NCBI GenBank assembly: GCA_964036045.1
Contig: OZ038378.1
Coordinates: 10,726,001-10,790,000, forward strand
DNA from: Eutreptiella sp. 'Long Island Sound 2002'
Lineage: Eukaryota; Protista; Euglenida
DNA length: 64,000 bases
Direction: 5' to 3'
Both the position numbers and the translations under genes were made by a program. The number at the start of each line of letters is the position of its first letter. Positions within the stretch are counted from its first letter, which is position 1. Positions 30,462 through 61,883 of the stretch are shown piece by piece. The notes below the pieces were generated by a model, which saw nothing but the letters and a program-made list of their open reading frames with translations, made no database searches and was not told the DNA's origin.

Positions 30462-31466
30462 CTGAAAGCGGAGCGGCATAGTGTTGCTGCCCCTCCCCCT
30501 CCCCGATTCAGATGCAGCACCACATGTGGTTGCGCTCCAACCGCTGCTGTGCCCCCCCCGATGGCGCACCAACCGTTTTGTAACCGCCGGGCCTTGGCTC
30601 CCACCGGTTCTCGAACCACCAGTACGCGCTGTGGCACCACTTCTCAGATCTGCCTTTAGCCTCTGGCCCTCTGGTGCGCATCGCTGGAGAGTCCCCCTGT
30701 GTACTGCCTGGCCCCCAGGTGCACATGCATGACGGAAGACAGGGAAAACGATTGTCAGGGGGGATTGCATGCGTAGACAAAGCCCTGCTGACGGGTGAGC
30801 CACAGAAAAGGGCTGTGGGCCCCATCACAGCGACATTCGCAAAAAATAATGTCAAAACAAAGAAAAGCACAACGGTGACCCAGCCCCTCTTTTCCCATCA
30901 CACGCACCCCGCCTCACCGTTGGTTTTCTGAACGCAGTTGTTGTGGTCAAGATGCGCCATGACATATTTGTGAGCCCATGGGCCACACCCCCTACGACGG
31001 GCATCCCCCCCCCGACCACACCCTCGACGCACTGCTTGCAGACCGCCGTGCGTAGACAATGGGCGGGGGACGGGCAACGCCCTTGGCCCCTTGCACAAGC
31101 ACAAACCCAGAAACCGACGGCCACTGATGCCCCCGATGCAGGTCGAATCAGACCACCACACTTCTGCCAGTCTCGTAGGTGAGCATCATGACCGCAGTCC
31201 CCCCCCCCCCCCCCGGGTGTCCACTCACCGACCAGCACTGACAGGCCTCGGATGCAGTCATTCCCAGCTCATGAAGTTTGGAGGGTGCTGTCCATCGCTG
31301 ATGTAGGCACCCTGTAACAGAGGGAGAAGGGGCTCCAGAAGTGTTATCCCTCATGACATGTGTCCTACTGCACCCCCCAGAGCACGCAGAATCATAAGAC
31401 GGGGGGGGGGGCGTCCGGGTGGGTCCGAAGTCGGGCGGGTGGGTCTCATCCAAAATACCCCCCCCC

Positions 31467-31485
31467 CTCTTATAAACGAGGCCTG
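31467..31485. mobile_element. Putative MITE terminus CTCTTATAAACGAGGCCTG, with a second exact copy at 34050-34068
   Basis: Identical 19-mer occurs twice inside the CRAL-TRIO intron, each next to GACCCACCC(G/A)-type subterminal repeats and a poly-C run. Confidence 0.45.
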
Positions 31486-32368
31486 AGGGCTGCACACCGA
31501 GCGTCAGGGCAGACCAGGGGGTCAAACGGCCCCCGTCCAACGGCACGATGTTCGGCCCAGACAGAGTGGGGGGGGCGACGGGGGCATCCCCATCGCCCTA
31601 TGGCATGGGCACCCATGTCACACTCTGCACCCGCCGCCCCCCCACAGACGTACCGTCATACCGCCGGTTTCCTGAACACACTTTTTGTGGTCAAGAATGT
31701 ATCGTGACCTGGTTGTGTGCACATTGCAGAGGGCAAGAGATCCAAAGGTCACGATTGCGGCATGTTTCAGGCCCTTGTTTGTCATACCGCGGATCGTGCG
31801 CAAGAACGGCCTTGCCTCAGTGGCTTGTCCTTTAGAGCGCAACGCTCGACGACGAGTGAGGGCTACGCCTGCGCGCCGCAGGTGTGCCGCAGGGCGCGCC
31901 CCAGGTGCCGCAGGCACCGCAGGGCAGGAATAATCCTCTTAAACTGTAGAAACAGTGAAACTTGCAACAAGAAGGAAAAAATACCACTCCATGACCATTT
32001 GGAGTACCTGCTTGTACAAAACCCACTGAGTGACTAGCACAAGGACCGCACTTGAGCAGGGGAAGCACGGGGGCTGGCGCCAGCCAATGTGTGACCCCGA
32101 GGGGTGTTCAACAGTTTGGGGGGCTGTAGGGGGGGGGGGGGGACCCCACCCCCCCCCTTCGTTGAGCCAAACCCAGCACCTTTTCCGGCAGGCCCCGTCC
32201 AAGCGCGCAAACACACAAAGCTAACAAGATGCACTGTGAATGGTGATTGTTTTGCTGCACTGCAGCACTTTCATAGCAGTACTGAATGTTGCCTTGAGTT
32301 CGCCCAAAGGCCTTTCCTTCCCCTTATCACAAACCACAGACATATATGTAGAGAAGCGAAGGGAGTCT

Positions 32369-32404
<36 letters not shown>

Positions 32405-32770
32405 GAAGTGAAGGGAGGAGAGGGGCCTCAAGCATCGGAATCATCCTCCCACTCCTCGCGTGCCCTCTTGCCGGTACTCTTGGGGCGAGCACGCTTCTTT
32501 GGCCGGGCTGCTTGTGCTCTTGTGACCGGGCAGGCTGCCGACCCATCAGACATGGATTCTGATGGCACATAGTCACTAGTGCCTGACGGGGCACTACTGC
32601 TGGAGGCTGCACTCGTACTGGAGGAGGCATTGGTGGACGAGCTGCTGCTACTACTACTGCCACTGCTACTACTACCTTGGTTTGGCCCAGAGAGAAGAGC
32701 AGGGAGAACAGTGGGCAGAGCCGGCGGCGCAGCAGGCTTCGCCTTCGGTGGCAATGGGGCCCGGAAATTG

Positions 32771-32828
32771 TCAGATCGGGGGGCAGAATCAGAAGTGGCC
32801 CAGAAGTGGGCAAGGTGGCTACATAACC
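32771..32828 (+). repeat. Solitary monomer of the young 85-bp satellite variant inside the CRAL-TRIO intron
   Basis: GGGGGGCAGAATCAGAAGTGGCCCAGAAGTGGGCAAGGTGGCTACATAACC carries the diagnostic GAAGTGGCCC and GGGCAAGGTGGCT of the 16181-19203 variant. Confidence 0.85.
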
Positions 32829-34088
32829 TTTTTGTGCTTTTCAGCCATTTTTGAATTCCCCACAAAATTCTGAGTATTTTGAGTATAGACACATGGGGTG
32901 GAACAAAAAAAATTCCCCCCGCCGTATGCCTAAAACAAAATCAGCGGCGCCTCCGGCGCCGACAAAGCACACTGTTCCGTGCGACAATTTTGGGGTCCGT
33001 AGAGGGGGGGGGGGGTGCCCCCCCCCCCCCCCCTTTGGGGTCAGGTCCCGGCCACGGCCAGCCCCCGTGAGGGGAAGAGCTCCGAATGCAGGATCTTCAC
33101 TTAGCAACCAACGACATTTGTATAGCGCCTCGTCTTGCAAATTTGGCGCTCAAAGCATGGACGTTTGCTGACAGGAAGGCAAAGCGGAACCCCTACCTTC
33201 TCAAGTAGCAACATAACCTGCCTCCTTGAGCATGACCACATGGGCTAAACTATTTTACTTTTACTAACCCCTTCAAATGCACCAAAATGTAGAGGAAGCA
33301 AACTTGGTACCCATAGACCGTGGGCGGATCGGCTACATAGCCCGGGATTCCCCATCACCCCAACCCAAAGCCCCAACCCACATGGGTTAGCAAGGGGGGG
33401 GGGGGGGGCTCCAAAAAAAAAACAAAAAAGAGTCCCCAGGGGACGTATTGCACAGTGCAAAGGGGTGGAGTGTGAAAAAGTAGTGAATCCAATAACAATG
33501 AACTGCCTGTTTGTTTGCTTCCTAACGCGCGCGGCAGGCGCCGCAAGGGTGTAGCCCTCAGTGCATGTACAGTGCGCAATGGTCACTGTTTGTGTCTTCT
33601 CACGGCGCGCATGAACAACGCCCTTGCCAGAGCAACAGTCGGTGTTGTTTCCGTCAAATTCAGTACGTTTACCGGGCACATTTGTTGTAAGTCAAATTCA
33701 TTCAAACCACTCAAGGTAGACCACAACATGGAGGCCCATTTGGCTCTGAGGGTGCAGGCTTGTGGGTAACAAACATTTGTGGATCTTCAAAGTGTCTCGT
33801 ACTAGGCACCCACGAGGCATTGACGACAACATCAAACCATGAACAGATTTTGGCATGGTGCCTGCATAAAGACGAAATGAAAAGGGGAAACAGCACACAA
33901 CCAGGCAAACCTTCGGGAAAGAGGGTGTGGCAGGTGCCCAACCCAGGAAACCCTCGGAATTATAAAGGGAGGGGAGGATCCAGAACCTTAGACCCACCCA
34001 ACCAGCTGAAGACCGACCCACCCGGACCCCCCCCCCCTTTGCAACGTTACTCTTATAAACGAGGCCTGGCAGCCCTCCCTGTGCACAC

Positions 34089-34682
34089 CTTGCAGATGTT
34101 CATCATCGCGGTCAGGATGGGTCCCGCGTCCACCATGTAAAACTGGTGGTATCGGAGGGGGTAGGAGTCCTGATAGATGACAGCCGCACGCTTCTCCATC
34201 TCCAGGTTGAAATTCTTCCACCCAAGGCCTCGACACAACCCAACGAAGGTGGCCCCAGCCCGGACTTCATCAAGGTCAGCGCAGCTCGCATCCATGGTTA
34301 ACAGCCATTCTTGGATCAAGGCAATCCACTCTGACTCACCCTGCATCTTCGACGGCAGGAACTGGGCATAATCCCAGCAGGTGGTCGGGTGGCCGTCGAT
34401 AACAAACTTGCTGGGCAGCACAAGACTCGGCCACTTTTTGTTCAAAAAGCCCTGGGCTTGCTGCATGGCAGTCTCTGTTGAGTAGCCATACTCACCCACA
34501 ACAACACTTTGGTATTTCTGGACGCGTTGGACGGCTTCATTGGTCTTGCCCTTGCTGATGATAGCGAACTGCGCCAACAGGAAATCGGAGTCTGGAAGCG
34601 GCACGCCCTGGCCCCGCAGGGCTGCCTTGAGCTCTTTACACCACAGGACCTCCTCTGCTGTCAGCGTGTGCTTCGATGCCAT
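34089..34682 (-). CDS. CRAL-TRIO (Sec14-like) lipid-binding domain protein, exon 1 of 2 (265 aa spliced)
   Basis: Encodes DSDFLLAQF...GLGWKNF...YQDSYPLRYHQFYMVDAGPILTAMMNICK; donor AAG|GTGTGC; 3627-bp intron (30462-34088) joins in frame to give ICK|VFLKEKLRKR. Confidence 0.88.
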
Positions 34683-34695
34683 GTCGAAGGCTCGG

Positions 34696-34712
34696 CTGTG
34701 AGGGACGGATGC
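34696..34712 (-). promoter_or_regulatory. Candidate trans-splice acceptor for the CRAL-TRIO gene (13-nt 5' UTR)
   Basis: Minus strand CATCCGTCCCTCACAG|CCGAGCCTTCGACATG. Confidence 0.45.
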
Positions 34713-36380
34713 GTGGGCGTGGGCGTGTCAATGCATACACGACAACGCAATGGACAACAGCACCCAAAGCGGTGTGGTGTAGGTGTGAGCTGCATACCCT
34801 TCCCCCGTGTACAGGGACACGTTGAAGAAGGGGCCAAGCCATGCAAAGTCATGGGTGACCAACCAATGCAGCGGTCTTGAAATGGGGAGACCAAAATTTC
34901 GCCCCCCGCCAGCCCGTTCAAAGCCGAGAGCCCAAACCAATACGGTCCGACCCTTTCATTGGTACTCCTTTGAGACCCTCTTCAATGCTCTCTTCGAGGC
35001 CTTCTTCCATGCCTTCTCCTGCAATCGCCACTATCACTCGCATCGTGTTGCCGGCTTTGATTGTCGGGGTCATATCAGGGGCTGCCAACATGTATCGGCC
35101 TTCATATCTTTGACACTGCGCATCTTTACACGCCACGGTAAAGCAGGAAATATACAACTGCAACAGTGAGCCCCCCCCCCCATGCACTAGCGAGGGCACT
35201 GTACCCCAAAACAGATTGAATGGCAACCAAATGCATGGAAACAGGTCAGTCATACGATGACAGAAGCGGTGTGACCCAGCAATCTACCCCATCACACAAG
35301 CACGGGCCAGGTTCCAAAAATGACGGTACAACGGAGACATTTCGCTTCGACAATACCGTGCCCACCCACAACCTGAGGCTTTGGGGGGTGAGCTTGCAGC
35401 GGACTTAGCCGCAGGCTTAGAAATGGGTTTTGGGGTCCTACTCTTAGGAGAAAAACAATTGCCAACGATATCCTTTGTGGACTGACTTGATATTAATGGC
35501 ATGACTGCCACCTGAATTCGGTCTCATGAAATATTGTGAAAGCGGCCTGTAGCATTTGGGGATCGTTTTTGAGGAAATGTTGCTGTGCCCAAACTCAACC
35601 ATCACGACCATCAGACAGGTCCACTTTACCGGTACAAGCTACTCAACATGATGTTGAATTGTACTGGGGACCTCAAAAACAGCGGCCCCAAAAAATGCTC
35701 CAAGACGACCGTACCAAAAGGTTGCAATGCTTGGTGGTGGCACTTCCTAAAGTGGGGGGGGGAGAGGGGGGCTGGACCACAATTGCGCCATGAACCATTT
35801 TACATCTACCATTCAGGATTCATGAGCGAATCAAACTGTGTGCCAAATCAATACACTGAATACATCTCCTGAATTTGGGACCCGCCATATCATGGACGAC
35901 AGGGGCCACAAAGGTAATTCCCCATGAAGATTGACACTGCACCACACGCAGGGCCCAGAACGTTCTGGTATATATATTCTCGATTTTGTACTGTGGTGTA
36001 TCTTCCATCGTGTGCGCAGGCCTCCTGTCAGTCCCCGGGAGCTAGGACATAATCATGATTCACACTGCAACAGTCTGAAAATCTTTAGATGCTATGCACA
36101 CTGCTGATCATGGTGTGTAGCCTCTTGGTGGACAAATTCCTCAAGGAGAATATCATAGGCTGTGTTAGCTGGGCTACAGCGGTGAGAATTCACAATGCTC
36201 TGTGGCAGCCTGCTAATTCATTTATTATCGGCGAGCTTAACGAAACATCAAACCTGTTCCTGATGGCCAATGTTGGCGCTTCCTCGGGCATACGTGGTAC
36301 AGAGGGCCTGCATTGTCCGGTCATGTGTCTTGCGTCTTGCGTGGGGGGGATCAAAGCTCCAGAAAAGTACCTCAGGAACG

Positions 36381-36479
36381 ACCACCACCACCACCACCAC
36401 CACCACCACCACCACCACCACCACCACCACCACCACCACCACCACCACCACCACCACCACCACCACCACCACCACCACC

Positions 36480-36557
<78 letters not shown>

Positions 36558-40185: not shown

Positions 40186-40548
40186 TCAGGCAGAGCCGCA
40201 CTTGATGGCACGGATCAGGTCCATCGCCTCCGCAGCATCGCTCGCGGCGGCGGGGCCCCCGGTCTGGGCCCCCAGGCAGGCGGCGATGCTGCGGTACAGC
40301 CGCTGCAGAGTGTGGGGCGTCATGTCGGGCTGGGCCGTGGACTGCAGCGTGGTGCGGTGCATCTCCTCGGACTTGCGGGAGGCGACGTGGAGGATGGCGG
40401 CCTTGATCCCGGCGAGTCGGGCCACGTTGAGCCCGAAGGACGACGGGGACACGCCCTGCTTCAGTTTGTACAGGAACGTGATCTTGGGGGGCACGAAGTC
40501 GTCGTCACTGGCCTCCGCGTGCGATTGCTGCCGCCGCCGCAGATGCTC
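40186..40548 (-). CDS. MSH3: MSH3 exon 12 (helix-turn-helix, stop)
   Basis: TGCCAG|GAG; ...[26 protein letters not shown]...; TGA at 40186-40188. Confidence 0.9.
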   Translation of the reverse strand, partial: EHLRRRQQSHAEASDDDFVPPKITFLYKLKQGVSPSSFGLNVARLAGIKAAILHVASRKSEEMHRTTLQSTAQPDMTPHTLQRLYRSIAACLGAQTGGPAAASDAAEAMDLIRAIKCGSA

Positions 40549-43500
40549 CTGGCAGACCGACGATGGAGTGACAGGCCGTTGGCAAACGCGTGTACGGGAG
40601 GGCGAGCGAGACACGCGTGCACACAAGAGGCGTGACACCCGAGCGGAGACATGTGCCTGGGGTCACCCACGAGGGCATCGAGAGAAGTCGGTACAGGCCC
40701 CCAGTACAGCCACAAGCACATTCTCAACGAAGGTCAGACATGTCCCGCTGGCAGACACATGGCGTGGACCCTCCGGGACAGGGGCCTTGTCTCGTCCGAC
40801 AAGAACCGGTTGACTCAGAGGTACGTGGCCGTAGCACATTCTGTTTCACGTCTGGCACCCTCCCCAGTGCCCTCACTCAGAGGGCGGGTAGAATCCAACC
40901 CCCGACCCCTGAACAAGGGATGGCTGTTCGCCATCATTCAGGAGAAGGAGGGTCTGTGTGTGTGAAAGAACGGGGGCTCGGTTGACGCCCCCTGACCAAT
41001 GCGGGCAACCGTGTGTCAAAAAAAAAAGTTGTGCTCGTTCCAACGGCTGTTTTCGAGATTCTCTGTGATTGGGGTCCGGGTCACCAGCCGGGGCCATGGG
41101 TTTTGGTGAGGGGCCCTCTGTCCATTCATCGCACCTTCGGCACGGGGCTTCGGAGGAACTGATTCATGGTCCTCCCACGGACCCTCGCCCCACGTGTCGG
41201 GGGCCCGATTGGCCTCCGCCCCGGGCGAGACTAACACCCGAGTCCCCCAGAGCGACTGCAGACGGGGCGGTCCCCAGGCCAGCACGTATGACAGAGGTCA
41301 CCGCAGTGTCAGAGTCGTAGGGTGCTCGGTTCCACGTGCCAAAAGGAGAGGACCCCTGGGGCCCTGGGTGCCATCCCATGTACAGTCGTCTCTTCCTCAT
41401 CCAGGGCACACAAGTGTGTTGGGGCGTCGTGGGGGTCGGCAAGCCCCGGCCGGCCAGAGGCTGCACGATCATCATCACCGGCCCGAGTCCGGGCACACGC
41501 CTCAGTGGCAGCCCAAGTGGCAGATTGGGTGGAGGTGGCGTTGACTTCGTGGCACTTCTGGCAAGTGTGAGAGCACCAACCGAAGGACGATGGAGGACGT
41601 CAGGCGGGCCATAGCTGAGTGGAGTGAGCCATAGGGGCATCGCGCTTGCGGCAGGCCAGGGGGCGATGGTATCATGGGGGGGTACGTGCTGGCGGCAGGG
41701 TGGATGGTGCGGTGCCGCTCCACGTGGGGCTGAGGGCACGATGGTGGGGGACCCGAGGGGGATGTTGGGAGGCCAGGGGCACACCTCGTCTTCATCCCGG
41801 AAGAAGGCCATGTAGTAGGACTCGACCATGGGTTTGTAGGCCTTCGCGAGGTCCGTGAGGATGGGGTAGTGGGTCACGAACAGGCACGTGCACCGGATCT
41901 GCGTGATGATGTGCTCCAGCGTCCCGTGCGCGATGGCCACCCCGTCGTGCGTACTGGTGCCGCGCCCCAGCTCGTCCAGAATCACCAGCGACCGGTCCGT
42001 GGCCCGGCGGAGGATGTCCGACGTCTCCTGCAGCTCGACCATGAACGTGCTGTGGCCCTGGGACATGTCGTCTCTGGCCCCCATCCGCGCGTAGATGGCG
42101 TCGAATACGCCGATGCGGGCGCTGGCGGCCGGGACGCAACACCCGATCTGGGCCATCAGGACGATCAGGGCCACCTGTTGTTACCGGACGTCGCGTCACA
42201 AAAATGAAAAACGGTGCCGTGCAAAATCACCAAAAAACTTCCGCAGGAGACGACAGTCCACCGGCAGGGCCGGGCCTCATCAGCAACGGCGGTTGGGCCT
42301 TCACTGACGGGAGTTGGGGGACACAATTTGGCCAGTAATGAGTGCCGGCGTTCGCGGTCCACAGCCGGTGGTCGACGCAGAGGGCCGTCTTTAAGGTCCT
42401 CATGGACAGTCCTGCACTGTTGTAGAGTGGTAGAGGAGGCAGTGCTGGGGGCACATCCTGCGGGGGGATGGCTGGCCCACGTAGATCCCAGGGACACCAT
42501 TTTCTTGCATGATCCCCGGGTTTCCATATGGCAGAGCGTCGCCTAAGCCGTGCTTCTCAAGCCTGCTGTGCTTTTTTTTTGGGGGGGGGGGGGTCTGGCA
42601 TGCTCTCATCTTGCCGATGATGGTCCATGCATCAGAGGAATTTGTATGCCACAGCGGGGCCCAACACTGCTGTTGTCTCCATCGTTTTGAGCGCTTTGTG
42701 CACGTGTCGCGCGGGGGGGGGGGGGGGCTCCTTGCAGTCCAAACATGAAATTACTTGACTCCCGGGTTTGTGGTCTCTGGACCGGCTGATGCTGTTTGCA
42801 GTCTTTGACATGGCATGGCAGCGGTTGGCCTGCCGTTTCAGGCAGCCTCGTGCATTTCCATGGGCGGTCCGGGGTCGTGCACGACACACACAGCACGTCG
42901 CACCTGCCGGATGTACGACGACTTACCGCCCATGTTGGGCCCGGTGATGATGATGCAGCGCTCGTGCTCCGTCAGCCGCACGTCGTTGGGGACGTACGTA
43001 GTGGCGGAGGAGGACGCCCCGTCGTCCGTGGCGCGGCGCTTCTCCTGTCCACAGGGCGTCAACATCCGCGACACGGGCACAATGCACATGGACCCTTCGC
43101 CCGATCGATCGGGCGCACACAAAAGCCCACAAGCCTCCCACTGTCTGGTGCTCAACTTTCAGGAAGCAATCCGAAGTCGGGTGCCAAAGGTGAATGAAGG
43201 CACTGGATCACGTTTCGAAACCCCCTTGTCCCAGTGCTTCCAAAAAAACCCGTTTCACGTTTTCTGACTTTGGGGTTCTGGTCAACATGCGTCAGATTCG
43301 CGACACTGTTTGTGACAAAAGGGGGTCATGAGGGGGAGGGCTGTACGAATACACGCATATACGCGTATGCATACATGTGTATACATCGCGTATCCGTTTA
43401 CGCGGATATAAACACCATGGCTCTGTGGGGAGTTTGTGTTTCCACGTTTCGTTGGGTCTCCTGAAGGTTGGGCGATGCAGGGTGTGTACAAACCAACAGT

Positions 43501-49500: not shown

Positions 49501-52500
49501 GCGCCTGCGTGCAGTCAGCCATGTGTGCACCGGCGTCTACCCACCCCAGTTTCTGCCTGCACCAGGCCCTCATCAGCCATATGCTCCCACGGCATCGAAT
49601 CGAGACCAACAATCCAGCTGGCAGCAGCCGCTGTCACCGTCGTGCGCACGAGAGCACCAGCCCTGTCAGTGTCTCGTGTCGCAGTGGCGGCTGTCAGTAG
49701 CCGCCAGTACAGGGGCCCAGGTGAGCCACCCCTGGGCTGTCGCACCCTTCTTGTACCTGCTAGATGCCGCGATCCTTGTGGCCGCAAAGAAGCGGCCCAC
49801 GCCTGTCCCAGCCTCCAGCCTCGAGGCAGCGGAACATAATTGTTCCGGCCCAACAAGGAAAAGGGGCGGGAGGGGAGGACCATCCATGCCTGTCACTTTG
49901 GAGGGTAGACTCCTTATCGTTGTTGGGTTTTTTTTTTTTGGCCTGTCTGGCTTCCAGTCCTGCAGCAAGGGAACGAGGAAGGAGGGAACCCCGGGGGGCA
50001 GGCTCCCGGGTTGTTGGCTACAGCTGCTAGGCAACCACTTGTCAACCAAGATCCCAAGAGGTACTACCTGCACTGCACACGCACTGCACACCGTGCGCGC
50101 GCCAGGTCGAGTTTTGGAACAAACTGTGGGGAATGGTTGCTTGGGGATGGTCACTGTTAATTTTTGGAGGCTTCTGGATAGCTGCGGTTAATTCCTGTTG
50201 GAGACTGCAAGCACCGGCCATCGCAGATGCCCAAGATGCAACCGTACATCACCGACACCCCAGAACAACGGGGAGCAGCGGGGGATAAGCCCCGTGGTAG
50301 AAACTGATTGTGGTTGATAGCAACACCTGATTGGACTGGATTTTATCCCAAAACCCGCAGGATGCAGGCTGGAAGGACCTGGACGTTGCGCACACATCGC
50401 GACACGCCAATATGGCCCAGAGGCACGAGATGGGGAGTGGATGCATATGCGTTCCGGGATGCGGACCGGACTTCCCAGACGCCCCGGGAGGTCGAAATGC
50501 AACGGCAGATGCGCCCAGGGATACGGACCGGAAACAACACCACGGGGGGACCGAGACGCAGACGGGAATTACCGACGTGCACTCCGGACCCAACATCAGG
50601 AAATACATCCTGGACTGCCCACACGGCATGCACCGGCATATGCGCCGGGATGCAGAGCGGATATATCATGCACACCGACATACAGACCGGAAGCACCAAA
50701 TATGTCCCAATAAAAACATCTTTTCCAACAAAAACAGTTCAAATTTGACCACATCTGAGGGCAGCGCACCTTCACAAACTTGAGAAATTCCGCCGGGTTG
50801 GCCTTTTGGTAGTGGCACTTTGTCAACACCTTCTCCAAATCCATCATCCCATCCAGCACGGCCTTCCGGAGGCTTGTCAGCGTGTCTGCACACGGCCCCT
50901 CCGTCAGTTCCGCGACTGCCTCCTGCCTCGCAACAATAGCCGCGGGCTTGAGCAGAGGACAGCACAACCACTGGTACAAGAGCCGGGCGCCGAAGGGCGT
51001 GCGTGTGTTGTTGAGGAGCCAGTACAGCGAGCCCTTCCCCTGCCAAGCCCTGTGCCCGAAAGAGCCTGCGGCAAGCGATGACGTCGACTGGAGGATTTCG
51101 AGATTTGCTAAAGCGGCAGCGGGCAAGAGCATGTGGTTGCGCGACGAGAAGTGCTCAAAGTGCCGCCCCTCCTGCAAAAGAAGAAGCAGCAAATCCAGTT
51201 GAAGCTGCGCGTCTGTAATTGTGCAGAATATCCAACAGAGTGCTGTGGCCTACAGGTAAGTTGAAGCTGCACAACTTGAGGTATTTCTTTCATCAAACTC
51301 TACACGGATCAAACAGGCAGATGAAGGTGAAATGTTCCTTCGTGGTGTGGACTTTAACTCTGATGATAAAAACGTGTCTCAAACTGTGCAGCTTCACGTA
51401 CGCCAGAGAGCGGACACCTTCTGAGTGTCAACCTGTTCGGTTGCGAATGATCAGGGAATGCTGAGATAAAAACATGTCAGTCCCCGAGCTACGGCGGTCT
51501 TGGGCCGGACTGTGGTCCGAACCCACGGAACGCCGTAGAGTGCAGCGACACCGCACCACGCAGCTGTCTGGTTCGATCCCGGGTGTCGGCATTTATTGGT
51601 AATTGATTCGCATTTATGATTCCTATGTTATGATGCAACGCCTCGAACAGCAAGCCGACATAGCTCAGCTGGGAGAGCGTTAGACTGAAGATCTAAAGGT
51701 CCCTGGTTCGATCCCGGGTGTCGGCACTCAGCGAAAGTGTGTCCTTGCCACTGCACTGAGTAAACCGAGGAGCACTTTACAGCAGTTTTTGCCACTGCAC
51801 TGCGTGCCCTCCGGTACTGTACCGTAGTACTGTACCGTAGGGCACTGTACCGTGGGGCACGCAGTGCAGTGGCAAAAACTGCTGTAAAGTGCTCCTCGGT
51901 TTACTCAGTGCAGTGGCAAGGACACACTTTCGCTGAGTGCCGACACCCGGGATCGAACCAGGGACCTTTAGATCTTCAGTCTAACGCTCTCCCAGCTGAG
52001 CTATGTCGGCTTGCTGTTCGAGGCGTTGCATCATAACATAGGAATCATAAATGCGAATCAATTACCAATAAATGCCGACACCCGGGATCGAACCAGGGAC
52101 CTTTAGATCTTCGGTCTAACGCTCTCCCAGCTGAGCTATGTCGGCTTCCTGATGTTACCGCGAATCATGAGGACCGAGGTCGTCATATATGATAAATGGT
52201 GATTTTTCTCCCTTTGAGACATCGGGACCCATCTGACCCAACATCTCAGGCAATAGCCAGATTTTTGAGACATCCGGGACACATCTGATTCCAAACTTTC
52301 AGGCAAAAGCCAGATTTTTCAAGATCTGGATCCTTTTTTCAAGCGACAGCTGAAGGAATACGCTTCCCCCAAGGGCCACGCAGAAGACTAGAGTCCAGAG
52401 CCACAGGTGCTAAATGCACTGATTCCCTGCTTCCTCCAATGACGCACGTGTGCTCAACATATGGGGTAGCAGGCTTGGCTGAACAGGGTGCAGGCAGATG

Positions 52501-54015
52501 AGGAGGGCAGGGTACAGGGCTCATGCAGAAGAGTCCGACGCAAGAAGCGCAGCGGCCCCTTTGAACTGCCCGAAGGGGGCCATGACAGATGTGGCGCGAG
52601 CACGGGATGAAAGGCGTGGGGGGCAGGGAAGGGGGGGGTACACAAAGAAGCGTGACCCGCGTACCTGCCCCAACGGGGACGAGCACTGCCGGAGCAGATG
52701 CTGAAGCTTGAAGGGCCTCAGGTACTCCAAAACAACCCCGAGACTCCCGACCACTGCCTGCGGCAGTGCCTGCACCTCCTCCAAAAGCGCGGGTGAGTCC
52801 CCGGGCTTTGGTTCGAAGAACTTGAGGACGCGGTCGCGCTGTGCCTCGGGCCCGAAGAGGCGGGCCGGCAGGGTCTCCAGGTGCACGCAGCCCATCCGGT
52901 CCAGGTCCTGGGCACCCGAGGTCTGGCCCCACGTGTTGACACCCAACTGTAGGATCATGCCTTTGGTCAGTGCCGACAGCGAATCCGGGATCACCACCTC
53001 CACCGGCTCCATTTGGTACAGCCGCGTTTCAAGTTCGCGGCGCAGGGGGCCATCCTCGAAGGTGTCCCACACAATGGCACCTCCGGTGGTGAGGGACACG
53101 GCAACGAGCGTGACCTGAGCCAGAGAGGGGTATGACGATGACTTTGACGCGACGTTCTAGCTTTACTTTGGGGGGCGAGTGGCGCCATCAACGAGAGACT
53201 GCTGACAGTGGTCTCCAGCCTTGCATAATCGGACATGCCAATTGTGTCCGGCAGGAGAACTGAGGTTGGGGATTAGCACTGCATCATTTGCAACTGAGAT
53301 AGGAACAGACGCCGCACCGATTTCCGCGTCGCACTAAGCATAAATGTTGGGGTGAAGGAGGGCGGCGGGCGGTATACTCCTTCCAAAGAACCTTTTCTGT
53401 GGCGGGGGTTGTAGGTGCTGCTGGAGTGGCAAGAGGTGTTGAAGTCTGTGGGGCGTGTCAGCCTGTGCTGATGTCTTTGGGGGTGGCTGAACGTGCTGTG
53501 GTGTGTGCTGGAGTGGCCTGTTGTGCGCACGCGTCAGTTGGAGTGGCTCGTTGCGTTGATGTTGGAGTTGCAGTGGATAAGGCTGAACGTTCCGCTGGTG
53601 ATGCCGCCTGTGTAAGGTTCGAGATACTCCGGCATGGGCAGACACACATCTACAGCCACCACCAAAGCACCCGTCGTTTTCCCCCTCCCAGACCTGCACG
53701 GTCTTCGGGTTGCCTTCCAGAGGCACAGCTGCGTCGGCGGACGTCTCGGAGATAATGAGCAGGCGGTTGTGCTCAGACTTGTACAGCCCCATAGTACTGC
53801 CTTGTGTGTCGTGCCCCTGGAAGCTGTCGTCCTCCTGGAGAAGAGAGAAGAGTGTGTTGGGGTGTGGTCAACAGTGTGCCGGGTCAAACGACAGCTGGGG
53901 CTGGGGCGAGGACCGCCACATGCAGGCACAGCCATGGCAAGGGCCAAGACGATGATAGAGGGAGCTCCAGCAGGTTGGTCGAGGGCGACAATATGCTTTC
54001 GTGATGAAAAAAGGG

Positions 54016-54086
<71 letters not shown>

Positions 54087-57000
54087 GGTGTGGGTGTGTG
54101 TGTGGATTGTGGCTGTTGCAAAAGTAAGGTAATTGCGAAACTTAATTGTTTTCGACCTTGGAACGCCCGGTGTGTGGAGTCCAGTCCCGCTTTGGCAAAA
54201 AATCCTGCAGCCGGTAAGCAATCTGCTGCAACCCAACCTTCTCCTCAATCACCTTCTCCCCATTCCCTCTTTGTCTCCAGTGTTACCTAGTGCCGACTCC
54301 AGTGTTACCTCACCAACCCACCTTGGAATTCCGTAGGCTATTCTGCACATCTTAGGGTTCGGGGCTGCTGGGGACGACAGCTGGCCTACATTTACGAAGC
54401 AGTGGGTGCGTCGCCAACACGCCCTACAGCATTAGCCAAGATGGAGTCCCTGTGTAGGTAATCGAGGGGGAGGGGCGTGTTGGCGACGCACCCAATGCAT
54501 TACCTACACAGGGACTCCATCTTGGCTAATGCTGTAGCTCCTGCAGCTCCCCACGCTGAGGCTGAAGATTTGTGGTCCAAAAAGGCCCCCTCAAAAGGTT
54601 GCATTTGATTCCTTTCCCGTAGCTTTCATGGAGGGGAGGATGAAGCAAACAGCACCACCACCGCCGGCAAGCAACAAGCTACAACTACAGCCCGAATCCG
54701 TTTGCCCCATTTTTTTGATGTATTCCTTGACTTCCCACATCTCAGGTTTGAACCAAAAACTGAATGATGGTGGCTGGACTTGTAGGAGGGGGGGTTGGGC
54801 CTGGAGACTGGGGGGATGGGGCTGGCACTCAGAGAAACGAGGGGGCCTCAGAAGAAGGAGGTTTGGACTTGCAAAAGGGGGTGATTTGGACTCTGATTCG
54901 CCAGCCAATACTTGGAGGAGGAGGAGGGCGATTCGGCAGCCAAAGTCTGGCTGGGGTTGAAGACGGAGGCTTGGGCACAAATAAGGACGTGGCAATCGGT
55001 GACCGGAATAAAGGTGGCACGGGTAAACATTTTGGTCAATTTACGCTCGAAGGGCTTGGAGCTGTTGGCCTCCCGGAAGGCCGCAGACTCGGTCTGGTGA
55101 ACAACGCCCACCTTGTACCCCAATCCCACAAGCCGGTCCACATGAAAGTACAGCCGCTGCACCGGAATGCTGGCGGTTAAAAAAGGCTCCCCCTCACGCT
55201 GAATCAGCATAATCTTCAAGTGCTTCGCCGCCACCTCCGCGTCTCGCCCGAAGAAGCGGAATTTGTACCCACACTCCACAAACAGCACCTGAGGGACAAA
55301 AAGACAGACGAACACACAAACGCGTGAATGCACAAAACCTGCAGGAGGACGCAAGAACCTCAAACGCCGGGAAACACAACTGCATACAACAACAGAACGG
55401 GTGCCAGTCCTGTTAGGGCTGTCCCGAGCATCCTGCCTTGCCTGTTTGCAAAGTCTCAAACCCTCACCCAAAGTGTACTTACCAATTCCAAGACATCCAG
55501 CCTGAACAAGCTGTTGATGAGCAGCTAAAGCCAGACACCCCCGGCAAAGGTTGGTGGGGGGGTAGACACCATGCCGGACATTTTCGGCAATACTGACTGG
55601 CTGGGGATGGGTGGCACCGGACTACCGGACTCCACATGTTGGCTGGGGTTGATGGAATGAATATCATCTGTTTTCCTTTCTTCCCATTTCATTCTTGTCT
55701 TCATGCACCATGACAACGCACATGCGCCCGTGGGGCAATGATCGGCAATGAGCCTCAGGCGAAGCGAGAGCAAGTGAACCGCACGGACACGCTGCCCTGT
55801 TGGAGAGTTCAGCCGCATCTCCAAATATCTGCCCGAACTTAATGCACACTCTGATCGCAACTCTGCAGTGCGAGTTTCAGGTATTGCATGCCACGCAAAC
55901 AAGGTCCCCCGCACCGGCAGTGTCCAAAGTGGCCGAAATCCTCCTCCTCTGAGCTTCTCAGCCCCACAACAACATTACACACTTCGGGTGCAGGCTGGTG
56001 CCCAGTGATCCCCCAGGGGTAGGGGACGAGGGAGTTAGAGGTTGGGGCCAGGGTCAGCCCAACCACCCACCAAAAATACCCCACTCGCCAGATGCGGTGC
56101 CCCCCGTGGCGTGTGATGTTGGTCACTCTGCAGCCAGCCCTAGCCACCCGACAACATTACCAACTGAGGCTTGTGGCCTCGGGACACCACCTGTGATGCA
56201 AGGCAACTTCAAAGAATCCATGTTCTCGAGTGATTTTGAGGATTCTTGCAACCCCAGAGCCCCCCAGCCCCTGAACTGAGAATGACGCAGCGCTGGTGCC
56301 ATGGGGGAAGCGGGCTGCAATTGTGAACAGTGTCACTCTCGTCCACGCACACTTTGCCCCCCCGAACTGACCGCGAGCATGTACTACGCGGTAACAGACC
56401 CGCGTTTATAGTACACCCGCCCCGACCTCTGACTTCAGGAGACAGCCAATGGCAAGGTTGCTTGTTAAGAGGTTGATGAGTATGAGCTGTGATGGTCCGA
56501 ATGGTGCCTTGATCACCAACTCTGGCCTGGCCCAGTATTGAGCAATTGAGTTCTCCATATTTGGCTCTGGTGAATACGGTTGCCCCTGTCGGTCGTGCTC
56601 TGGGAGTCTGGACCCCAAGAGGACACTGCATTTTGAGAAGGCGGATGCACATGTGCACAACTTGCCTTGCAGCCCCCCTCCCCGTCCCCCATCTCCTGTC
56701 CCATGCCTCCATCTGTCAGCGCCAGTGGGTATTGGGGGCAGAGGGCAACGTACATGAGCAGTGGCACACCCTGTTCCCCATCTTTTGGCATGCCAGTCAT
56801 CCGGATGGGTATTGGAGGTCATTAACCTCTGTGCAAAGGCCTCATTTTTTGGACACCAGGTGTTCTCCAGTTTCGCCTATGGGGCACACCCCTTTGTCAC
56901 CCTGCCCACACTGCACCCCACCTGTGGTGGAATGTCCCGTAATCTGAGTATGCTACATGTTGGTGTGTCCCTTCCAGCGGGGCCTTTAGCCCGCTGCAGC

Positions 57001-59618
57001 ACAGTGTACACGTCCAAGCACTATCACACACATTACCATCAACAAACAGCAACCTACCACTGCACACATTTGCACACCATCTGTATGCCGTGTGCAAAAG
57101 CAGGCCTCGAAACAAGCACACAGACATGTTTGGCATACCACGTCTTTATTCTGGTTTTTGATGGCCACATACTGCTCCTCGAGTGGAGTCAGCTTCTCCC
57201 GGACCCTTGTTCCCGTCGTGACAATGTCCGCTTGGCCCGTGCCCTGATGCAATGAGGTTGGCACATTGGGAAAGTGAGGCTGAGAGTGCGCGGCAGGTGG
57301 TGAACCATTTGGGGACGGATTGGGAGGATTGGCGCTTGAAAGGCAACACGCACTGGCTCCAACTGTCCACAAACGCACGTGCACTGATTTGGGGTTGGCA
57401 AAGGACAGGGTAAATGGTGGGGGCAGTACTCCACGAGGGCATAGGGGGAAGGCAGCATGCACCCAGGACGGCTGCACAAGACTTTCAAGTCAGGGTAGGC
57501 ATGTCCTGACAGACAGGCAGTGTAGACGGAACCTCCGGAGCACTGACCTTGTTTGGCAAAGCAGTCCTGAAGGAAGCGATTCACAGAGGCTACTTCTACT
57601 AGTGGTCCTTTTGTTTTGCCTGGGACCAAAATCCACCAAACCTGACTGTTTTTTGTTTGCTTGACTTTCAAAGTGTGCGACTGTCGCTGACTGGCTGACA
57701 GTGCTACGAAAGTGCTCAGATAAGATCCTGGAGTCTAGTGTCTCTGAGATCTGACAATGTCAAACCCCCACAGGGTAAGTGTGTTGATGGGGTTGTTCAT
57801 TTCATGTCTGCTGGTTAGAGAACACTGTCTAGCACAGCATGTGCTGTTATGCCGTGAAGGCAGAATCAGAGTATCGTGGGGAACGTACAGTGTCCGTATC
57901 CAATAGAAGCGCCGACACATCAAACCCAAATATGCAGCGTCTAGTGTCTGCATGTCGTGCTACAAGCCCAAGGGGGCGAAGACGGGTACACCTCAAAATT
58001 GAGCAAAGTTGAAGAGTCAACTGGAGCCAGTGGCCCATACACCAGTCATACCGGCAATGTGTCAGACCCATTCCAATCAAAGGAGGTCGACTGGGAAAGC
58101 AAGTTACTACCCCTTGGCATAAGAGAAATTGGCGGGGAAAAAACAGGACGCCCCAACTTCCTACGCGATAGATGCTGCACATGCTCCCCAGGGCGACCAC
58201 TCCAGTGGTAGTGCAACTGGCATCGGAAACAGTCGATGCCCGTCTGAGCCCCACTAGTGTCGCTCCTCTTCCGCCGCAGGCAGAAGAGTATGACGAGGAG
58301 ACGCGCCCCCTGCCGCTAACGGAGCCGGTGGTGGGGTGCACTGCTCCAGGCTGGGCCGCCTTTTTGCCCTATGTGGGAAAGCAGCATGACGTGTTCTTAG
58401 GTACCTCTGGAAAAAACTGGAGACACGCCACCCTGCCACCCATGGTACTAGTGGAGGGGCGCGCAGCTGCAGGGGTAGGTGGCAGGGCTGCCCCAACAGC
58501 CCCCGGCCATGTTGGGTTGATGAGGAACTGAACCTCCAAAATCCACAAAACCTGACTGTGAAATGTAGGGTGGGTTGTCCATCCTGCATAGCATAGTGCC
58601 AAAAACACAGCAGAACAGCACATGCACCCCCCCCGCCCTGCGCGCGCACACACACACAAACACACACACACACACGATCAACGTGACAAACAGGCACTGG
58701 TTGATCCATCAGATCTCATCATGCGAAATGGCAGACAAGAGACATGTGGGACACCATGGACCTTCGTGCAGCACGAAAGGAAACGGAAGCGAGTTGAATC
58801 CGGAGTGGTCCAATCCAGCATGCAGCTCGGTCGCGCGCGCGCGCGCACACACACACACACACACATACACACACAGAAACACAGACACATACGCACGCAC
58901 CCACGCACGCACACGCATACAAGCACATGCATACATGATAGCAGAAGCACAGATAAGTGTCACAGAATGCTCAGCAGGCCAGTGCAGACAAAGGTAACAA
59001 GGTAACAGACGGAAGTGCAAAAGATAGGCCCCTTTTTGAACAGTGACAATAGGCTGAAATGTACGTGGGGTTTAGTGAATGACGATGCACACGTGTGAAG
59101 AGTGACTGCACAAGCATCCAGCAGTGCTGCATGTCCCTGCGGATGGCGAGAAAACAAACTAGCAGTGATGAGTGGAGGGTCCTGTGCAACCTTTGAACTT
59201 GGTGTCACACCAAAAACATTGGCAACGGGCAAACCGACTGCCTTGTGCCAAGCCACTGCCCAGACCTGGCTTTTGGAGGCCATAGCCGCCTTGGAGCGTG
59301 CCATGGGGAACTGGTTGCATAGTGTTGGGTGTAACCACCCAACCACGCACACACCGGAAATGTTACATGAGGCATTGTTGTGCACTTGAAAAGCCCTAGA
59401 GTTCCGCTGCCCCTTGGTCAAGCGTGCAAACACATAATGCTGGATAGATGCCCAGAAGAGAGGCGGCACAACTGGTGCAACGAATGACCCGACGCTGAAA
59501 AATTGGAAGGAGAGAGGAAGTGGTGCAGTTTGGGTGGCGGAACACGCACATACTTGCAGAAACCATGGATGACTGAGTACAGCTTATCACGAGCTTTAGA
59601 AACTGGTAGGGGCAGTGC

Positions 59619-59671
<53 letters not shown>

Positions 59672-61362
59672 CGCTCGCTCGCTTGCTTAATCCCTTGCTC
59701 GCTCGCTCTCTCTTTCTCCTCCCTCCCTGCCCCTCCCTTTATCTCTACCTTTCTCGCTTGCTCATTTGCTGACTCTATCTCTCTCCCTCTCTTTCCCTCC
59801 CCTTCCTTCTCTGTCTTCCCTCCTGTGTGCCCCAATGTCCATTCAATCAACATTCATTCATGCTTTCGTCAATGTGATCACTAGGCCTTTGGAAACACCC
59901 TCCCCCCCATACATACTTCACGGACACACACGCGCGTGCACACAGGCAAGGATACAGGAGGGCGCAGAACAATTAATGCCAAGTTAATGTAGACAAAGAT
60001 GGCAGACAGGCCGCACACACGCAAACGCAATCCGCTGCCTTGAAATTCGGCCCGCAATCTTTGCGGCTTCGCATCGGCCATTGCATTCGATGTTGGCGTC
60101 CCTCGTCCCTCGTCCTTCATCAGTCTGTGATTCAGCCCATCTTTTCGCTGTGGTTTTCACAGTGCCATATCAATCACTTTACACAGGGTAGATGGTGCAC
60201 GACATGACGGGTCTCCCGGGCTTCTTCTTCTGCAAACGTTGTTCCGCTTGTTCAGACCTGTGGTACTTTCTCTGCAATGCCAAAAGGCTGGGTTTGGGAG
60301 TGACCTAATCCCATCTGACTTCATCCCGATATTTTCTCTGACAAAGTTCTGACTGTCCGGTGCTCGAGCTGCACGACACGATGGGTCTCCCGGGCTTCTT
60401 CTTCGGCAAACGTTGTTCCGCTTGTTCACACCTGCACATAACTGCGAGCTGCCTTTGTGATACAGTAGCAGTAGTGGATTGTGGTCGAAGGGTGTGCTAC
60501 ACACTGGGGCATGGGGCGTTGAACTTGCCCTCCGATGGGCTTGCCTACATCCGGCAGCACCACCTACAAGACACCTAGCAGGCCCCAAAGCCATAAAACC
60601 CACAATTATATCATTCCCCCTAAAAATGCCCACTACCACAACTGAGTGAGGCACACCGAGATCAATTATGCACCCCCCTTGTGGGCTCGCAATACCAAAC
60701 CAATGAAGAGCAATTGACGTCGGGAGCCCCCATCTAGATAGCTGGGAGGCACAGAGCAAAAAATGAAGACCAATTGAGAGGCAGCATCAGAGATGCCATT
60801 AGACCCCAGCATGCTGGGTCTGCCAGATGTGAGGGCAGTGGTTGCCCAGTGTGGGTGTTGTTCTGTGGTTACCGCTGACTTGATTGCATGGCGCTTTTCA
60901 AAGAAGAGGACTGCATCTTCTCCCATGTTTCCATGCCTCTGGGGGAGTGGTGTTTACCTGCTGGAGGCTGCCCGGTGTGTTTCAAACTGCTTCTGGCGGC
61001 TGCTTAGCTTTTTCACAGAGCATAATAGCATCTCTGAACACGAAAACAATGTTAACGCCCCCCACGATAACAATGTCACCCTCTCAGAGGAGAACAACAC
61101 GCCTAGAATCGCCAGGGCCGCTGGGCATCTCTGAAATGGAATTCAGTAGTAGTAGGGGCAGGGCTACCTCACGCAGCATATCTTGAGCACACTGCACAAA
61201 ATTGGACGGACCCGGCAGCTTTGGTGCCTCCAAGCATCCCTTTGTGCTGCTGAATGGATGGATTTGGCAGCATGGTACAGCATGGCGCAAGCCAGTAACA
61301 GTAAGGCATCTTGCCTTGTTCCTGCTGTGTCTGAACATTAGTGGGCAGGAAAACCTCCAACC

Positions 61363-61401
<39 letters not shown>

Positions 61402-61883
61402 AGAGAGCACGCTGAGACCTGGACAAAAGCAATGTCCTTATTGCTTTTGTCGGCTTTGGTTGGTGCCGCAGAGAAGGTATGCATCGCAGTCCCGTTGGTG
61501 GCAGCGTTTTGCTTTGTGGACGACGTGTCCTCCTCATCAAACATCAGAGCGACATCCTCGCAGGTTGGGCTCTTCTTTCCGGCCCCTTCTTTCGGTGACA
61601 CAACTTTGGGCTGTTTGGCCTTGGGCTGCCCCTCAGGTGTCTCTGTGGCCGTCCGTTTTGGAGCTGCAGGCGATGGCGTGTGACTGGATTGGGGCGGCGG
61701 CACAGGGGACGCCGCTTTGGAAGGGGTCCCGTTGGAAGGGGTCAGGGACGGCGTGGGGCTGGCAGTGGGGGGTGCAGCAGGGGGAGGTGCCTTAGGGGTC
61801 GGCAACGGGGACGGTGATGCGGTGGAGGGGGCAGGCGTGACAGTAAAAAACTTGGAGATTGTGGGCTGCTTCTTGGGAGGCAT
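40186..61883 (-). CDS. MSH3: DNA mismatch repair protein MSH3 (MutS-beta subunit), 12 exons, 3531 nt CDS including stop, ~1176 aa
   Basis: N-terminal PIP-box QPTISKFF; KLTPLEEQY; [11 protein letters not shown] (MSH3-type, not the MSH6 GxFYE); ASIP..RL; QTESAA; Walker [10 protein letters not shown]; STFMVEL; DELGRGTST; FVTHY; C-terminal [11 protein letters not shown]. All exons join in frame through GT-AG introns. Confidence 0.96.
41785..42174 (-). CDS. MSH3: MSH3 exon 11 (ATPase core)
   Basis: CAACAG|GTG; [11 protein letters not shown]...STFMVEL...DELGRGTST...FVTHY; GAG|GTGTGC. Confidence 0.94.
42904..43044 (-). CDS. MSH3: MSH3 exon 10 (Walker A)
   Basis: GGACAG|GAG; ...YVPND...[16 protein letters not shown]; CAG|GTGCGA. 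Confidence 0.9.
43355..44145. repeat. Repeat family with alternating purine-pyrimidine palindromic cores (MSH3 intron 9); related copies at 47693-48085 (intron 7)
   Basis: Cores such as CGCGTATACGTCGCGTACACGTATACG, with shared flanks ACAGTGTCTACAAT(T/C)AGCAGGC.GC.T.TAC. Confidence 0.7.
45504..45602 (-). CDS. MSH3: MSH3 exon 9
   Basis: CCGCAG|GTC; [11 protein letters not shown]...[11 protein letters not shown]; CAG|GTGTGG. Confidence 0.9.
45992..46234 (-). CDS. MSH3: MSH3 exon 8
   Basis: CCTGCAG|GAT; DVDRVPAAW...RFHTP...[12 protein letters not shown]; GAG|GTCTCT. Confidence 0.9.
48348..48794 (-). CDS. MSH3: MSH3 exon 7 (lever/clamp)
   Basis: AACGCAG|GCG; AFQKVAN...[26 protein letters not shown]; AAG|GTCCCC. 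Confidence 0.88.
50770..51171 (-). CDS. MSH3: MSH3 exon 6
   Basis: TTTTGCAG|GAG; LANLEIL...[19 protein letters not shown]...DLEK...EFLKFVK; AAG|GTGCGC. Confidence 0.92.
51654..51726 (+). tRNA. tRNA-Phe(GAA), inverted duplicate
   Basis: 73 nt; acceptor GCCGACA/TGTCGGC, D-stem GCTC/GAGC, anticodon stem TTAGA/TCTAA with loop CTGAAGA, T-loop TTCGATC. Confidence 0.95.
51938..52010 (-). tRNA. tRNA-Phe(GAA)
   Basis: Exact reverse complement of 51654-51726. Confidence 0.95.
52073..52145 (-). tRNA. tRNA-Phe(GAA) variant with C instead of U at position 33
   Basis: Identical to the other copies except that the anticodon loop reads CCGAAGA. Confidence 0.8.
52665..53114 (-). CDS. MSH3: MSH3 exon 5 (connector domain)
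   Basis: GCTCAG|GTC; [21 protein letters not shown]...ELETRL...LEYLRPFKL; CAG|GTACGC. Confidence 0.9.
53694..53834 (-). CDS. MSH3: MSH3 exon 4
   Basis: TTCTCCAG|GAG; EDDSF...NRLLIISE...KTVQ; CAG|GTCTGG. Confidence 0.85.
54017..54104 (+). repeat. (TG)n microsatellite in MSH3 intron 3
   Basis: About 60 bp of pure TG followed by a degenerate tail. Confidence 0.97.
55004..55288 (-). CDS. MSH3: MSH3 exon 3 (mismatch-binding domain I)
   Basis: CCTCAG|GTG; [14 protein letters not shown]...FTRATFIP; CCG|GTCACC. Confidence 0.9.
57139..57243 (-). CDS. MSH3: MSH3 exon 2
   Basis: CATCAG|GGC...[19 protein letters not shown]...GTG|GTATGC. Confidence 0.85.
58640..58920 (+). repeat. (CG)n/(CA)n microsatellite patches in MSH3 intron 1
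   Basis: Two patches, at 58640-58675 and 58832-58920. Confidence 0.9.
59618..59825 (+). repeat. (CT)n/(TCGC)n microsatellite and pyrimidine tract in MSH3 intron 1
   Basis: Direct reading of the sequence. Confidence 0.93.
61419..61883 (-). CDS. MSH3: MSH3 exon 1 (PIP-box plus Pro/Ser/Thr-rich tail)
   Basis: [13 protein letters not shown]...; upstream TTGGTTCAG|CCATG is a possible SL acceptor; donor CAG|GTCTCA. This region is poorly conserved, so the 3' boundary is less certain. Confidence 0.75.

Follow-up and report, generated by a model that had tools for sequence, protein, structure and literature searches.

The question raised by this locus is whether twelve introns that all fall between codons, and all within one and the same exon context, record an unusual mode of intron gain or simply the composition of the genome in which they lie. 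The window, meaning the whole stretch of 64,000 nucleotides (nt) that was analysed, is C1:10726001-10790000 of a 2.28-Gb assembly (contig OZ038378.1, deposited under Eutreptiella sp. 'Long Island Sound 2002'), and feature coordinates are given as window positions. It carries, on the minus strand, a predicted MSH3 gene of 12 exons and 11 introns and a predicted CRAL-TRIO gene of two exons and one intron (34088-30462). A sequence-only reading of this DNA had reported that all 12 introns are phase 0 with a G|GT...CAG|G context, had put the probability of this at 1/4096, and had proposed either intron gain restricted to codon-aligned AG|G sites, possibly by transposons of the Introner type, or selection for exons that keep the frame when skipped. 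In the analysis described here that observation is partly confirmed, being real and at the same time ordinary for this genome: the 12 introns are very probably conventional ones whose uniform phase arises from the need for an AG|G context combined with codons that end in G or C.

The gene models themselves were recovered exactly. A script that sought stop-free segments of the reported exon lengths, with AG on their 5′ side and GT on their 3′ side, found a single ordered and consistent exon chain for MSH3 on the minus strand, running from 61883 to 40186. In the recovered models every MSH3 and CRAL-TRIO exon has a length that is a multiple of three and 12/12 introns are phase 0, with G|GT donors at all 12 (AG|GT at 10 of them), CAG acceptors at all 12 and a G at the start of each following exon. 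The short repeats across intron ends are likewise present as described, namely CAGGTC at intron 4, AGGTC at intron 8, CAGGTG at intron 10 and AGGTGT at the CRAL-TRIO intron.

The figure of 1/4096 rests on a frequency of 0.5 for phase 0, which is the wrong null here. The MSH3 exons have 81% G+C (41% G) at the third codon position and 34% G at the first, so that an AG|G cut falls at a codon boundary in 49 of 60 AGG sites (82%), and cryptic in-frame GT-AG pairs near the MSH3 junctions are overwhelmingly phase 0. Over 29.2 kb of coding sequence of the sampled genes described below, the distribution over phases 0, 1 and 2 is 82/12/6% for AGG and 71/17/12% for AG|. With phase 0 thus at 72-82%, the probability of twelve phase-0 introns out of twelve is 0.02-0.09, the lower value (0.020) going with a rate of 0.72 and the upper one with 0.82, and that of a G|..|G context at all twelve is 0.086 at the sampled frequency of 81.5%.

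The rate of 0.72 comes from a phase-blind sample of junctions drawn from exon-wise Pfam and other profile matches across the genome, covering MutS_V paralogues, Cpn60_TCP1 (CCT), proteasome, HSP70, dynein AAA_6 and class I tRNA-synt_1 genes. A junction was accepted where a GT..AG pair joined abutting profile coordinates with zero indel, in any phase and any exon context, the sole further criterion being a pyrimidine at acceptor position -3. Altogether 139 junctions were examined, of which 119 were accepted, 12 had no GT/GC-AG solution, 7 had poor solutions only, and one, in a MutS paralogue, was too ambiguous. The accepted junctions are distributed over phases 0, 1 and 2 as 86/17/16 (72/14/13%), which fits the AG| expectation of 71/17/12% (p=0.69) and rejects a 50/30/20 split (p=6e-6). 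The subset with an AG|..|G context (n=82; phases 64/11/7) fits the AGG expectation of 82/12/6% equally (p=0.56). The phase-0 fraction is therefore the one expected from the codon positions of AG|G, an outcome that the sequence-only reading had itself named as refuting its proposal, and the claim that the pattern lies far beyond chance is not confirmed. The exon flanks of the sample are strongly biased, with G at -1 in 96%, A at -2 in 82%, C at -3 in 49%, G at +1 in 84% and T at +2 in 42%, and with C at acceptor position -3 in 97%.

The explanation to which these data point can be put in a few steps. The twelve introns, in common with almost all conventional ones of this genome, sit at (C/A/G)AG|G(T) exon junctions, which is the classical protosplice or exon-flank consensus. 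This consensus is read by the U1 and U5 small nuclear RNAs and U2AF. Recognition of the exon flanks by the spliceosome would, we infer, yield the junction context, through insertion bias or later selection, between which the data are equal. As codons here end in G or C in about 80% of cases (in G in about 40%) and often start with G, AG| and AG|G come to lie at a codon boundary in 71-82%; phase 0 is then to be expected for about three-quarters of introns, which makes an all-phase-0 gene unremarkable. The sequence-only reading had in fact mentioned the enrichment of AG|G at phase 0 by codons rich in G and C at the third position, as background; it is this remark that is borne out and that accounts for the whole pattern, and in this respect alone the earlier interpretation was right and is, taken as a whole, partly supported.

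Several points weigh against this explanation. Twelve phase-0 introns out of twelve still have a probability of only 0.02 at the sampled rate of 0.72, which is on the high side, the gene having been picked post hoc though. The sample consists of conserved housekeeping families only, and some of its intron positions are common to paralogues. False GT-AG solutions, if there are any, would favour phase 0; that they are few is suggested by the CAG and G contexts, which hardly vary. Six of the window junctions, namely MSH3 junctions 1, 3, 4, 5 and 9 and the CRAL-TRIO junction, are predicted only. Finally, T stands at +2 in 41 of 100 G-starting next exons vs 21% expected (p=7e-6), an excess that codon usage does not explain. 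It corresponds to the extended protosplice consensus, (A/C)AG||Gt, which is known in eukaryotes generally (PMC3488318).

A mechanism limited to codon-aligned sites finds no support in the sample, in which 33/119 junctions are phase 1 or 2 and have the same G|GT..CAG|G context. The introns of one MutS paralogue, on C21, are in phases 2, 1 and 2, and one of them splits a glycine codon of the DELGRGT motif (G|gtctgt..ttcag|GC), and in a paralogue on C4 a phase-1 intron splits the next glycine codon of the same motif. Five accepted junctions of HSP70 have in common an intron (CAG|gt..cag|G, phase 1) at Pfam position ~155-163; a sixth copy, which has a GC donor, was not counted among them. Earlier, Vesteg et al. 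2010 (PMC2920757) described ten short GT/AG introns, five of them phase 0 and five phase 1. Two further observations on the sampled families may be recorded. Tandem MutS homologues on C8 (L003 and L004, at 50.71 and 50.74 Mb) have a phase-0 intron at a common position (CAG|gtcgct..gatcag|GTT) whose length differs between the two copies (848 nt and 3,927 nt). Several dynein heavy-chain genes (C8:18042166, C5:10870786 and C20:26164998) are intronless single frames of 4,281-4,822 codons, and about 20 paralogues are multi-exon.

In their class the 12 introns are best read as ordinary conventional U2-type GT-AG spliceosomal introns. All have GT..AG ends and a CAG acceptor, and of the 240 nt that directly precede the AG (20 in each intron) 98 are C and 73 are T. 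For Euglena gracilis, Gao et al. 2024 (PMC11170887) describe conventional introns with a GTGTG donor, a CAG acceptor and a C-rich pyrimidine tract, exon flanks and phase not having been examined in that work; in the window, an exact GTGTG donor is present only in introns 9 and 11 and the CRAL-TRIO intron, and the others match this consensus in part. The nonconventional motif of euglenids (CAG at +4..+6 with CTG at -8..-6) occurs at none of the 12, and this class was ruled out, as all borders are GT-AG with pyrimidine tracts. An assignment to the intermediate class was also rejected, since only introns 4 and 6 can pair their ends (intron 6 with -11.9 kcal/mol over 10-nt ends, intron 4 with -19.5 kcal/mol over 20-nt ends; pairing is weak in 10/12) and the CAG/CTG motif is missing. 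Published counts for E. gracilis are 43% conventional and 57% nonconventional introns. Against this census, a good GT-AG solution exists for some 86% of the 139 conserved-gene junctions; it may be in other gene classes that nonconventional introns are concentrated.

The genome is read as that of E. gracilis or a very close relative on account of its spliced-leader matches and the sequence that follows them. A 24-nt query, which we take to be the E. gracilis spliced-leader sequence, has 5,458 genome matches vs 0 for the reversed control, and in the two copies inspected it is followed by gtata or gatta, in agreement with the published 5′ splice site of the spliced-leader RNA gene. The approximately 5,458 copies are dispersed over the chromosomes on both strands. 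The two that were inspected (L001:1-3024 and L002:1-3024) resemble spliced-leader RNA genes within a common longer repeat unit, and one of them has a mutated splice donor.

The sequence-only reading had also drawn on Introner transposons, and the alternative that survives best is of this kind: that introns are gained by a process that targets and duplicates AG|GT, either as a target-site duplication of a transposon or as a tandem duplication of an AGGT-containing exon piece, with the repeats as its relics and the phase bias as a reflection of where the targets lie. We regard this as unlikely. It draws on AG|GT being found at about 40% of spliced junctions vs 21% expected, on a match at +3 as well in those four junctions of the window that have AG|GT on either side, and on a first pool of 72 junctions in which the intron start matched the start of the next exon beyond shuffled pairs (p=0.002), with examples such as CAG|gtgacc..cag|GTGACC and CAG|gtcgg..cag|GTCGG. 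This last signal was dropped as an indication of target-site duplication after it failed to replicate in 59 further junctions, in which the observed start match was 1.44 vs 1.44-1.46 expected (p=0.50-0.68) and matches at +3 numbered 7/21 vs 8.5 expected; on the upstream side there is no repeat signal at all (p ~0.5). The repeats of the window itself have a mean length of 4.17 in matched vs 4.05 in shuffled donor/acceptor pairs (p=0.32). The 12 introns are, moreover, mutually unrelated, an all-vs-all blastn comparison returning one 54-nt match between introns 7 and 9, and the repeat carriers 8, 4 and 10 occur at full length only once in the 2.28 Gb. The proposal of an Introner or target-site-duplication origin is thus not upheld, the introns forming no sequence family, three of them being single-copy and the repeats having the length of those in shuffled pairs; the clustering that had been suggested as a check gives no family among the 12 by blastn and none genome-wide for introns 8, 4 and 10. 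A fixed target motif and a splicing consensus are alike compatible with these data; (A/C)AG||Gt is also the protosplice consensus of eukaryotes in general (PMC3488318). A stronger form of the same thought would trace an unusually tight tie of the introns to AG|GT (G at -1 in 96% and at +1 in 84%, GT in about 40%) to the gain of most of them at AGGT sites by a target-duplicating process, the 72% of phase 0 recording its insertion preference and not a constraint of splicing. It is improbable as well, its only hints being the +2 T excess and the unreplicated match between intron starts and next-exon starts.

A different objection to the preferred reading, in which splicing context and codon composition together set the phase, concerns the gene models. 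The uniform phase could in part be an artefact of reconstruction by hand, nonconventional introns, phase 1 or 2 introns or micro-exons having been hidden by the choice of the nearest in-frame GT..AG pair. The high share (57%) of nonconventional introns in E. gracilis would fit this, as would the 13-46 other in-frame GT/GC-AG pairs, mostly phase 0, that lie within 60 nt of each MSH3 junction, and the predicted-only status of the six junctions listed above, two of which (introns 5 and 9) adjoin insertions. Nonetheless such an artefact is very unlikely, given that 6/11 MSH3 junctions are confirmed by RNA or exact collinearity, that 12/12 are without the CAG/CTG end motif at the published positions and have CAG acceptors behind pyrimidine tracts, that exon 4 has a fitting length and coding periodicity, and that a good conventional solution exists for about 86% of the phase-blind junctions.

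The confirmation comes from two sources. Comparison with RNA contigs was limited to window positions 40250-46240, within which introns 8 and 9 have no RNA coverage. Contigs from two studies (runs X1 and X2) join 40547 to 41784 without mismatches, skipping 1236 nt with GT..AG ends, which is intron 11, and a contig of run X3 (record 17) joins 42171 to 42901 with no mismatches and 6 ambiguous letters, skipping exactly the 729 nt of intron 10; the genomic DNA of run X7 is collinear with the window. The transcript check that the sequence-only reading had called for thus succeeds exactly for introns 10 and 11, the other ten lying outside RNA coverage. The second source is homology, for which all searches were run exon by exon and not on the joined protein. 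In the structure alignments of the separate exons, human MSH3 numbering runs unbroken over introns 2 (30|31), 6 (427|428), 7 (543|544) and 8 (623|624), and a 69%-identical relative, P0003, is collinear over introns 8 and 10. Introns 1, 3, 4, 5 and 9 were placed by their GT-AG ends, reading frame, codon-position periodicity of G+C and length, and stay predictions. Exons 2-12 and both CRAL-TRIO exons are low in G+C at codon position 2 and high at position 3, a pattern that the intron starts do not have. The only protein fragments retrieved with exon 5 were dropped as proof of introns 3-5: in P0121 the gene call reads through genomic DNA, and P0122 is a diverged fragment within a dynein gene intron of another assembly. 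A stray gene fragment corresponding to ~31 codons of MSH3 exon 5 (diverged, 84% identity), lies inside a dynein heavy-chain gene intron at L119:10001-10402 (ENA contig ctg9057_28x_l).

The larger gene is identified as MSH3 by its domain order and best matches: Pfam places MutS domains I-V in order along the exons, with the MutS_V join of exons 10 and 11 at profile positions 17|18, the best solved-structure match is human MSH3 for exons 3 and 5-10, and database matches are named MSH3. Its features, which without exception lie on the minus strand, are as follows; each intron is phase 0. Exon 1 (61419..61883, 465 nt), which starts with the ATG at 61883 and has a predicted 3′ end, encodes an N-terminal low-complexity tail with a PCNA-box-like QPTISKFF; it has no Pfam match and weak codon periodicity. 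The sequence ttcag, two bases 5′ of this ATG (61884-61890), would suit a spliced-leader acceptor and favours 61883 over the upstream ATG at 61931. Intron 1 (57244..61418, 4175 nt, CAG|gtctca..atcag|G; predicted) lies in an unconserved region, as the sequence-only reading had cautioned, and has 35 other in-frame GT/GC-AG pairs within 60 nt. Exon 2 (57139..57243, 105 nt), the start of MutS domain I, shows coding periodicity, and its residues 13-34 correspond to residues 8-29 of the human MSH3 chain in a weak match (E 1.8). It is followed by intron 2 (55289..57138, 1850 nt, GTG|gtatgc..ctcag|G) and by exon 3 (55004..55288, 285 nt), which matches Pfam MutS_I positions 19-110 (E 7.5e-20) and human MSH3 residues 32-124.

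Intron 3 (53835..55003, 1169 nt, CCG|gtcacc..tccag|G; predicted) has a tandem CAGGAG acceptor as well as other alternatives. The linker exon 4 (53694..53834, 141 nt) has no significant homology in Pfam or among solved structures; its 47 amino acids fit a 46-residue gap in human MSH3 numbering, and its G+C by codon position is 0.62/0.40/0.79. Intron 4 (53115..53693, 579 nt, CAG|gtctgg..ctcag|GTC; predicted) is single-copy in the genome and leads to exon 5 (52665..53114, 450 nt; Pfam MutS_II; human MSH3 residues 175-304), after which intron 5 (51172..52664, 1493 nt, CAG|gtacgc..tgcag|G; predicted) adjoins an 8-residue insertion relative to human MSH3. Exon 6 (50770..51171, 402 nt) covers the first half of MutS domain III (Pfam MutS_III 1-100, E 5.9e-27; human residues 308-427), its last residue being human 427, at the border with intron 6 (48795..50769, 1975 nt, AAG|gtgcgc..cgcag|G). 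Exon 7 (48348..48794, 447 nt) represents the domain III/IV region (human MSH3 residues 449-540) and is separated by intron 7 (46235..48347, 2113 nt, AAG|gtcccc..tgcag|G) from exon 8 (45992..46234, 243 nt), the end of domain III (Pfam MutS_III 156-194; human 546-622).

Intron 8 (45603..45991, 389 nt, GAG|gtctct..cgcag|GTC) is single-copy in the genome, and exon 9 (45504..45602, 99 nt) corresponds to human MSH3 residues 624-655. Intron 9 (43045..45503, 2459 nt, CAG|gtgtgg..gacag|G; predicted) borders on exon 10 (42904..43044, 141 nt), which begins with an insertion of 10-12 residues and has the Walker A motif (Pfam MutS_V 1-17; human 659-692). Within intron 9, about 45 nt at 43849-43901 have a word depth of 18,240 in a DNA run vs ~38 around them, and the piece recurs in numerous unrelated RNA contigs, which marks it as the end or core of a repeat that is transcribed and very abundant. 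Intron 10 (42175..42903, 729 nt, CAG|gtgcga..aacag|GTG) is again single-copy in the genome and precedes exon 11 (41785..42174, 390 nt), the ATPase core (Pfam MutS_V 18-139, E 1.3e-48). Intron 11 (40549..41784, 1236 nt, GAG|gtgtgc..gccag|G) is followed by exon 12 (40186..40548, 363 nt including the TGA stop; Pfam MutS_V 136-187), which is likewise represented in RNA contigs. Inside intron 11, a 186-nt RNA contig of an estuary metatranscriptome matches 40681-40866 over its full length with no mismatches; it could be a retained intron or a separate transcript. Pieces of MSH3 mRNA identical to the sequence of this freshwater Euglena are found in estuary metatranscriptomes (runs X1, X3 and X4), so that those libraries contain either the species or carry-over from it.

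The second gene, also on the minus strand, is assigned to a CRAL-TRIO domain protein, the domain match of its exon 1 (34089..34682, 594 nt; Pfam CRAL_TRIO 15-116) scoring above the Pfam cut-off (27.9 bits vs 22.6). Its predicted phase-0 intron (30462..34088, 3627 nt, AAG|gtgtgc..ttcag|GTG) leads to exon 2 (30258..30461), which consists of 67 codons and a stop and shows coding periodicity.

Selection for symmetric exons that keep the frame upon skipping, for which it can be said that ten of ten internal MSH3 exons are multiples of 3, is scarcely credible, because exon symmetry is automatic once all introns are phase 0, itself covered by the codon-position effect, exons are hardly ever skipped in E. 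gracilis, for which Gao et al. 2024 (PMC11170887) counted 11 such events, a single one canonical, among 28,337 introns, loss of exon 3, 5, 6, 10 or 11 would delete core MutS domains, and 28% of sampled junctions lie outside phase 0.

Taken by itself the locus is of little consequence, its introns being normal ones in two housekeeping genes. The modest by-product is the description of a genome in which 72% of sampled introns are phase 0 and the exon flanks follow a strong AG|G(T) consensus, the former being fully explained by the codon positions of AG|. It also provides a calibrated null for this genome (phase 0 at about 0.72, G|..|G at about 0.8), against which all-phase-0 genes can be judged. 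In animals and plants phase 0 makes up roughly 50% of introns, a share that the 72% of the 119-junction sample exceeds. In the euglenid intron literature, the 13 introns of Vesteg et al. 2010 (PMC2920757) were the only ones found with a reported phase, and no analysis of exon flanks was found; the flank consensus and the phase-0 share are in this sense mildly new, and descriptive.

Among known systems, the Introners of Micromonas and Aureococcus, which take their splice sites from target-site duplications, resemble the window introns in the short AGGT-containing direct repeats at both ends, seen here in 4-5 of the 12; they differ in that the window introns share no family, that those searched for genome-wide (8, 4 and 10) lack further copies, and that terminal inverted repeats are no stronger than chance would give. 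Nonconventional euglenid introns belong to the same organism, and borders made ambiguous by repeats are common in that class, whereas those of the window introns are GT-AG. The strong end pairing of introns 4 and 6, both with GT-AG borders, is the feature that defines the 'intermediate' euglenid introns of Milanowski et al. The closest likeness is to the conventional introns of Gao et al. 2024 (PMC11170887), with which the window introns agree in their GT..AG ends, CAG acceptor and C-rich tract, their donors matching GTGTG fully or in part; their lengths of 0.4-4 kb are inside the published range, two of them are removed in RNA, and nothing essential is different. The protosplice model (PMC3488318) likewise describes an (A/C)AG||G(t) flank consensus with phase 0 as the commonest phase. 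In other genomes, however, protosplice frequencies leave the phase-0 excess partly unexplained (PMC3488318), whereas here the AG| expectation of 71/17/12 fully covers the observed 72/14/13, and the exon flanks, with G at -1 in 96% of junctions, are stronger than the protosplice consensus of those genomes.

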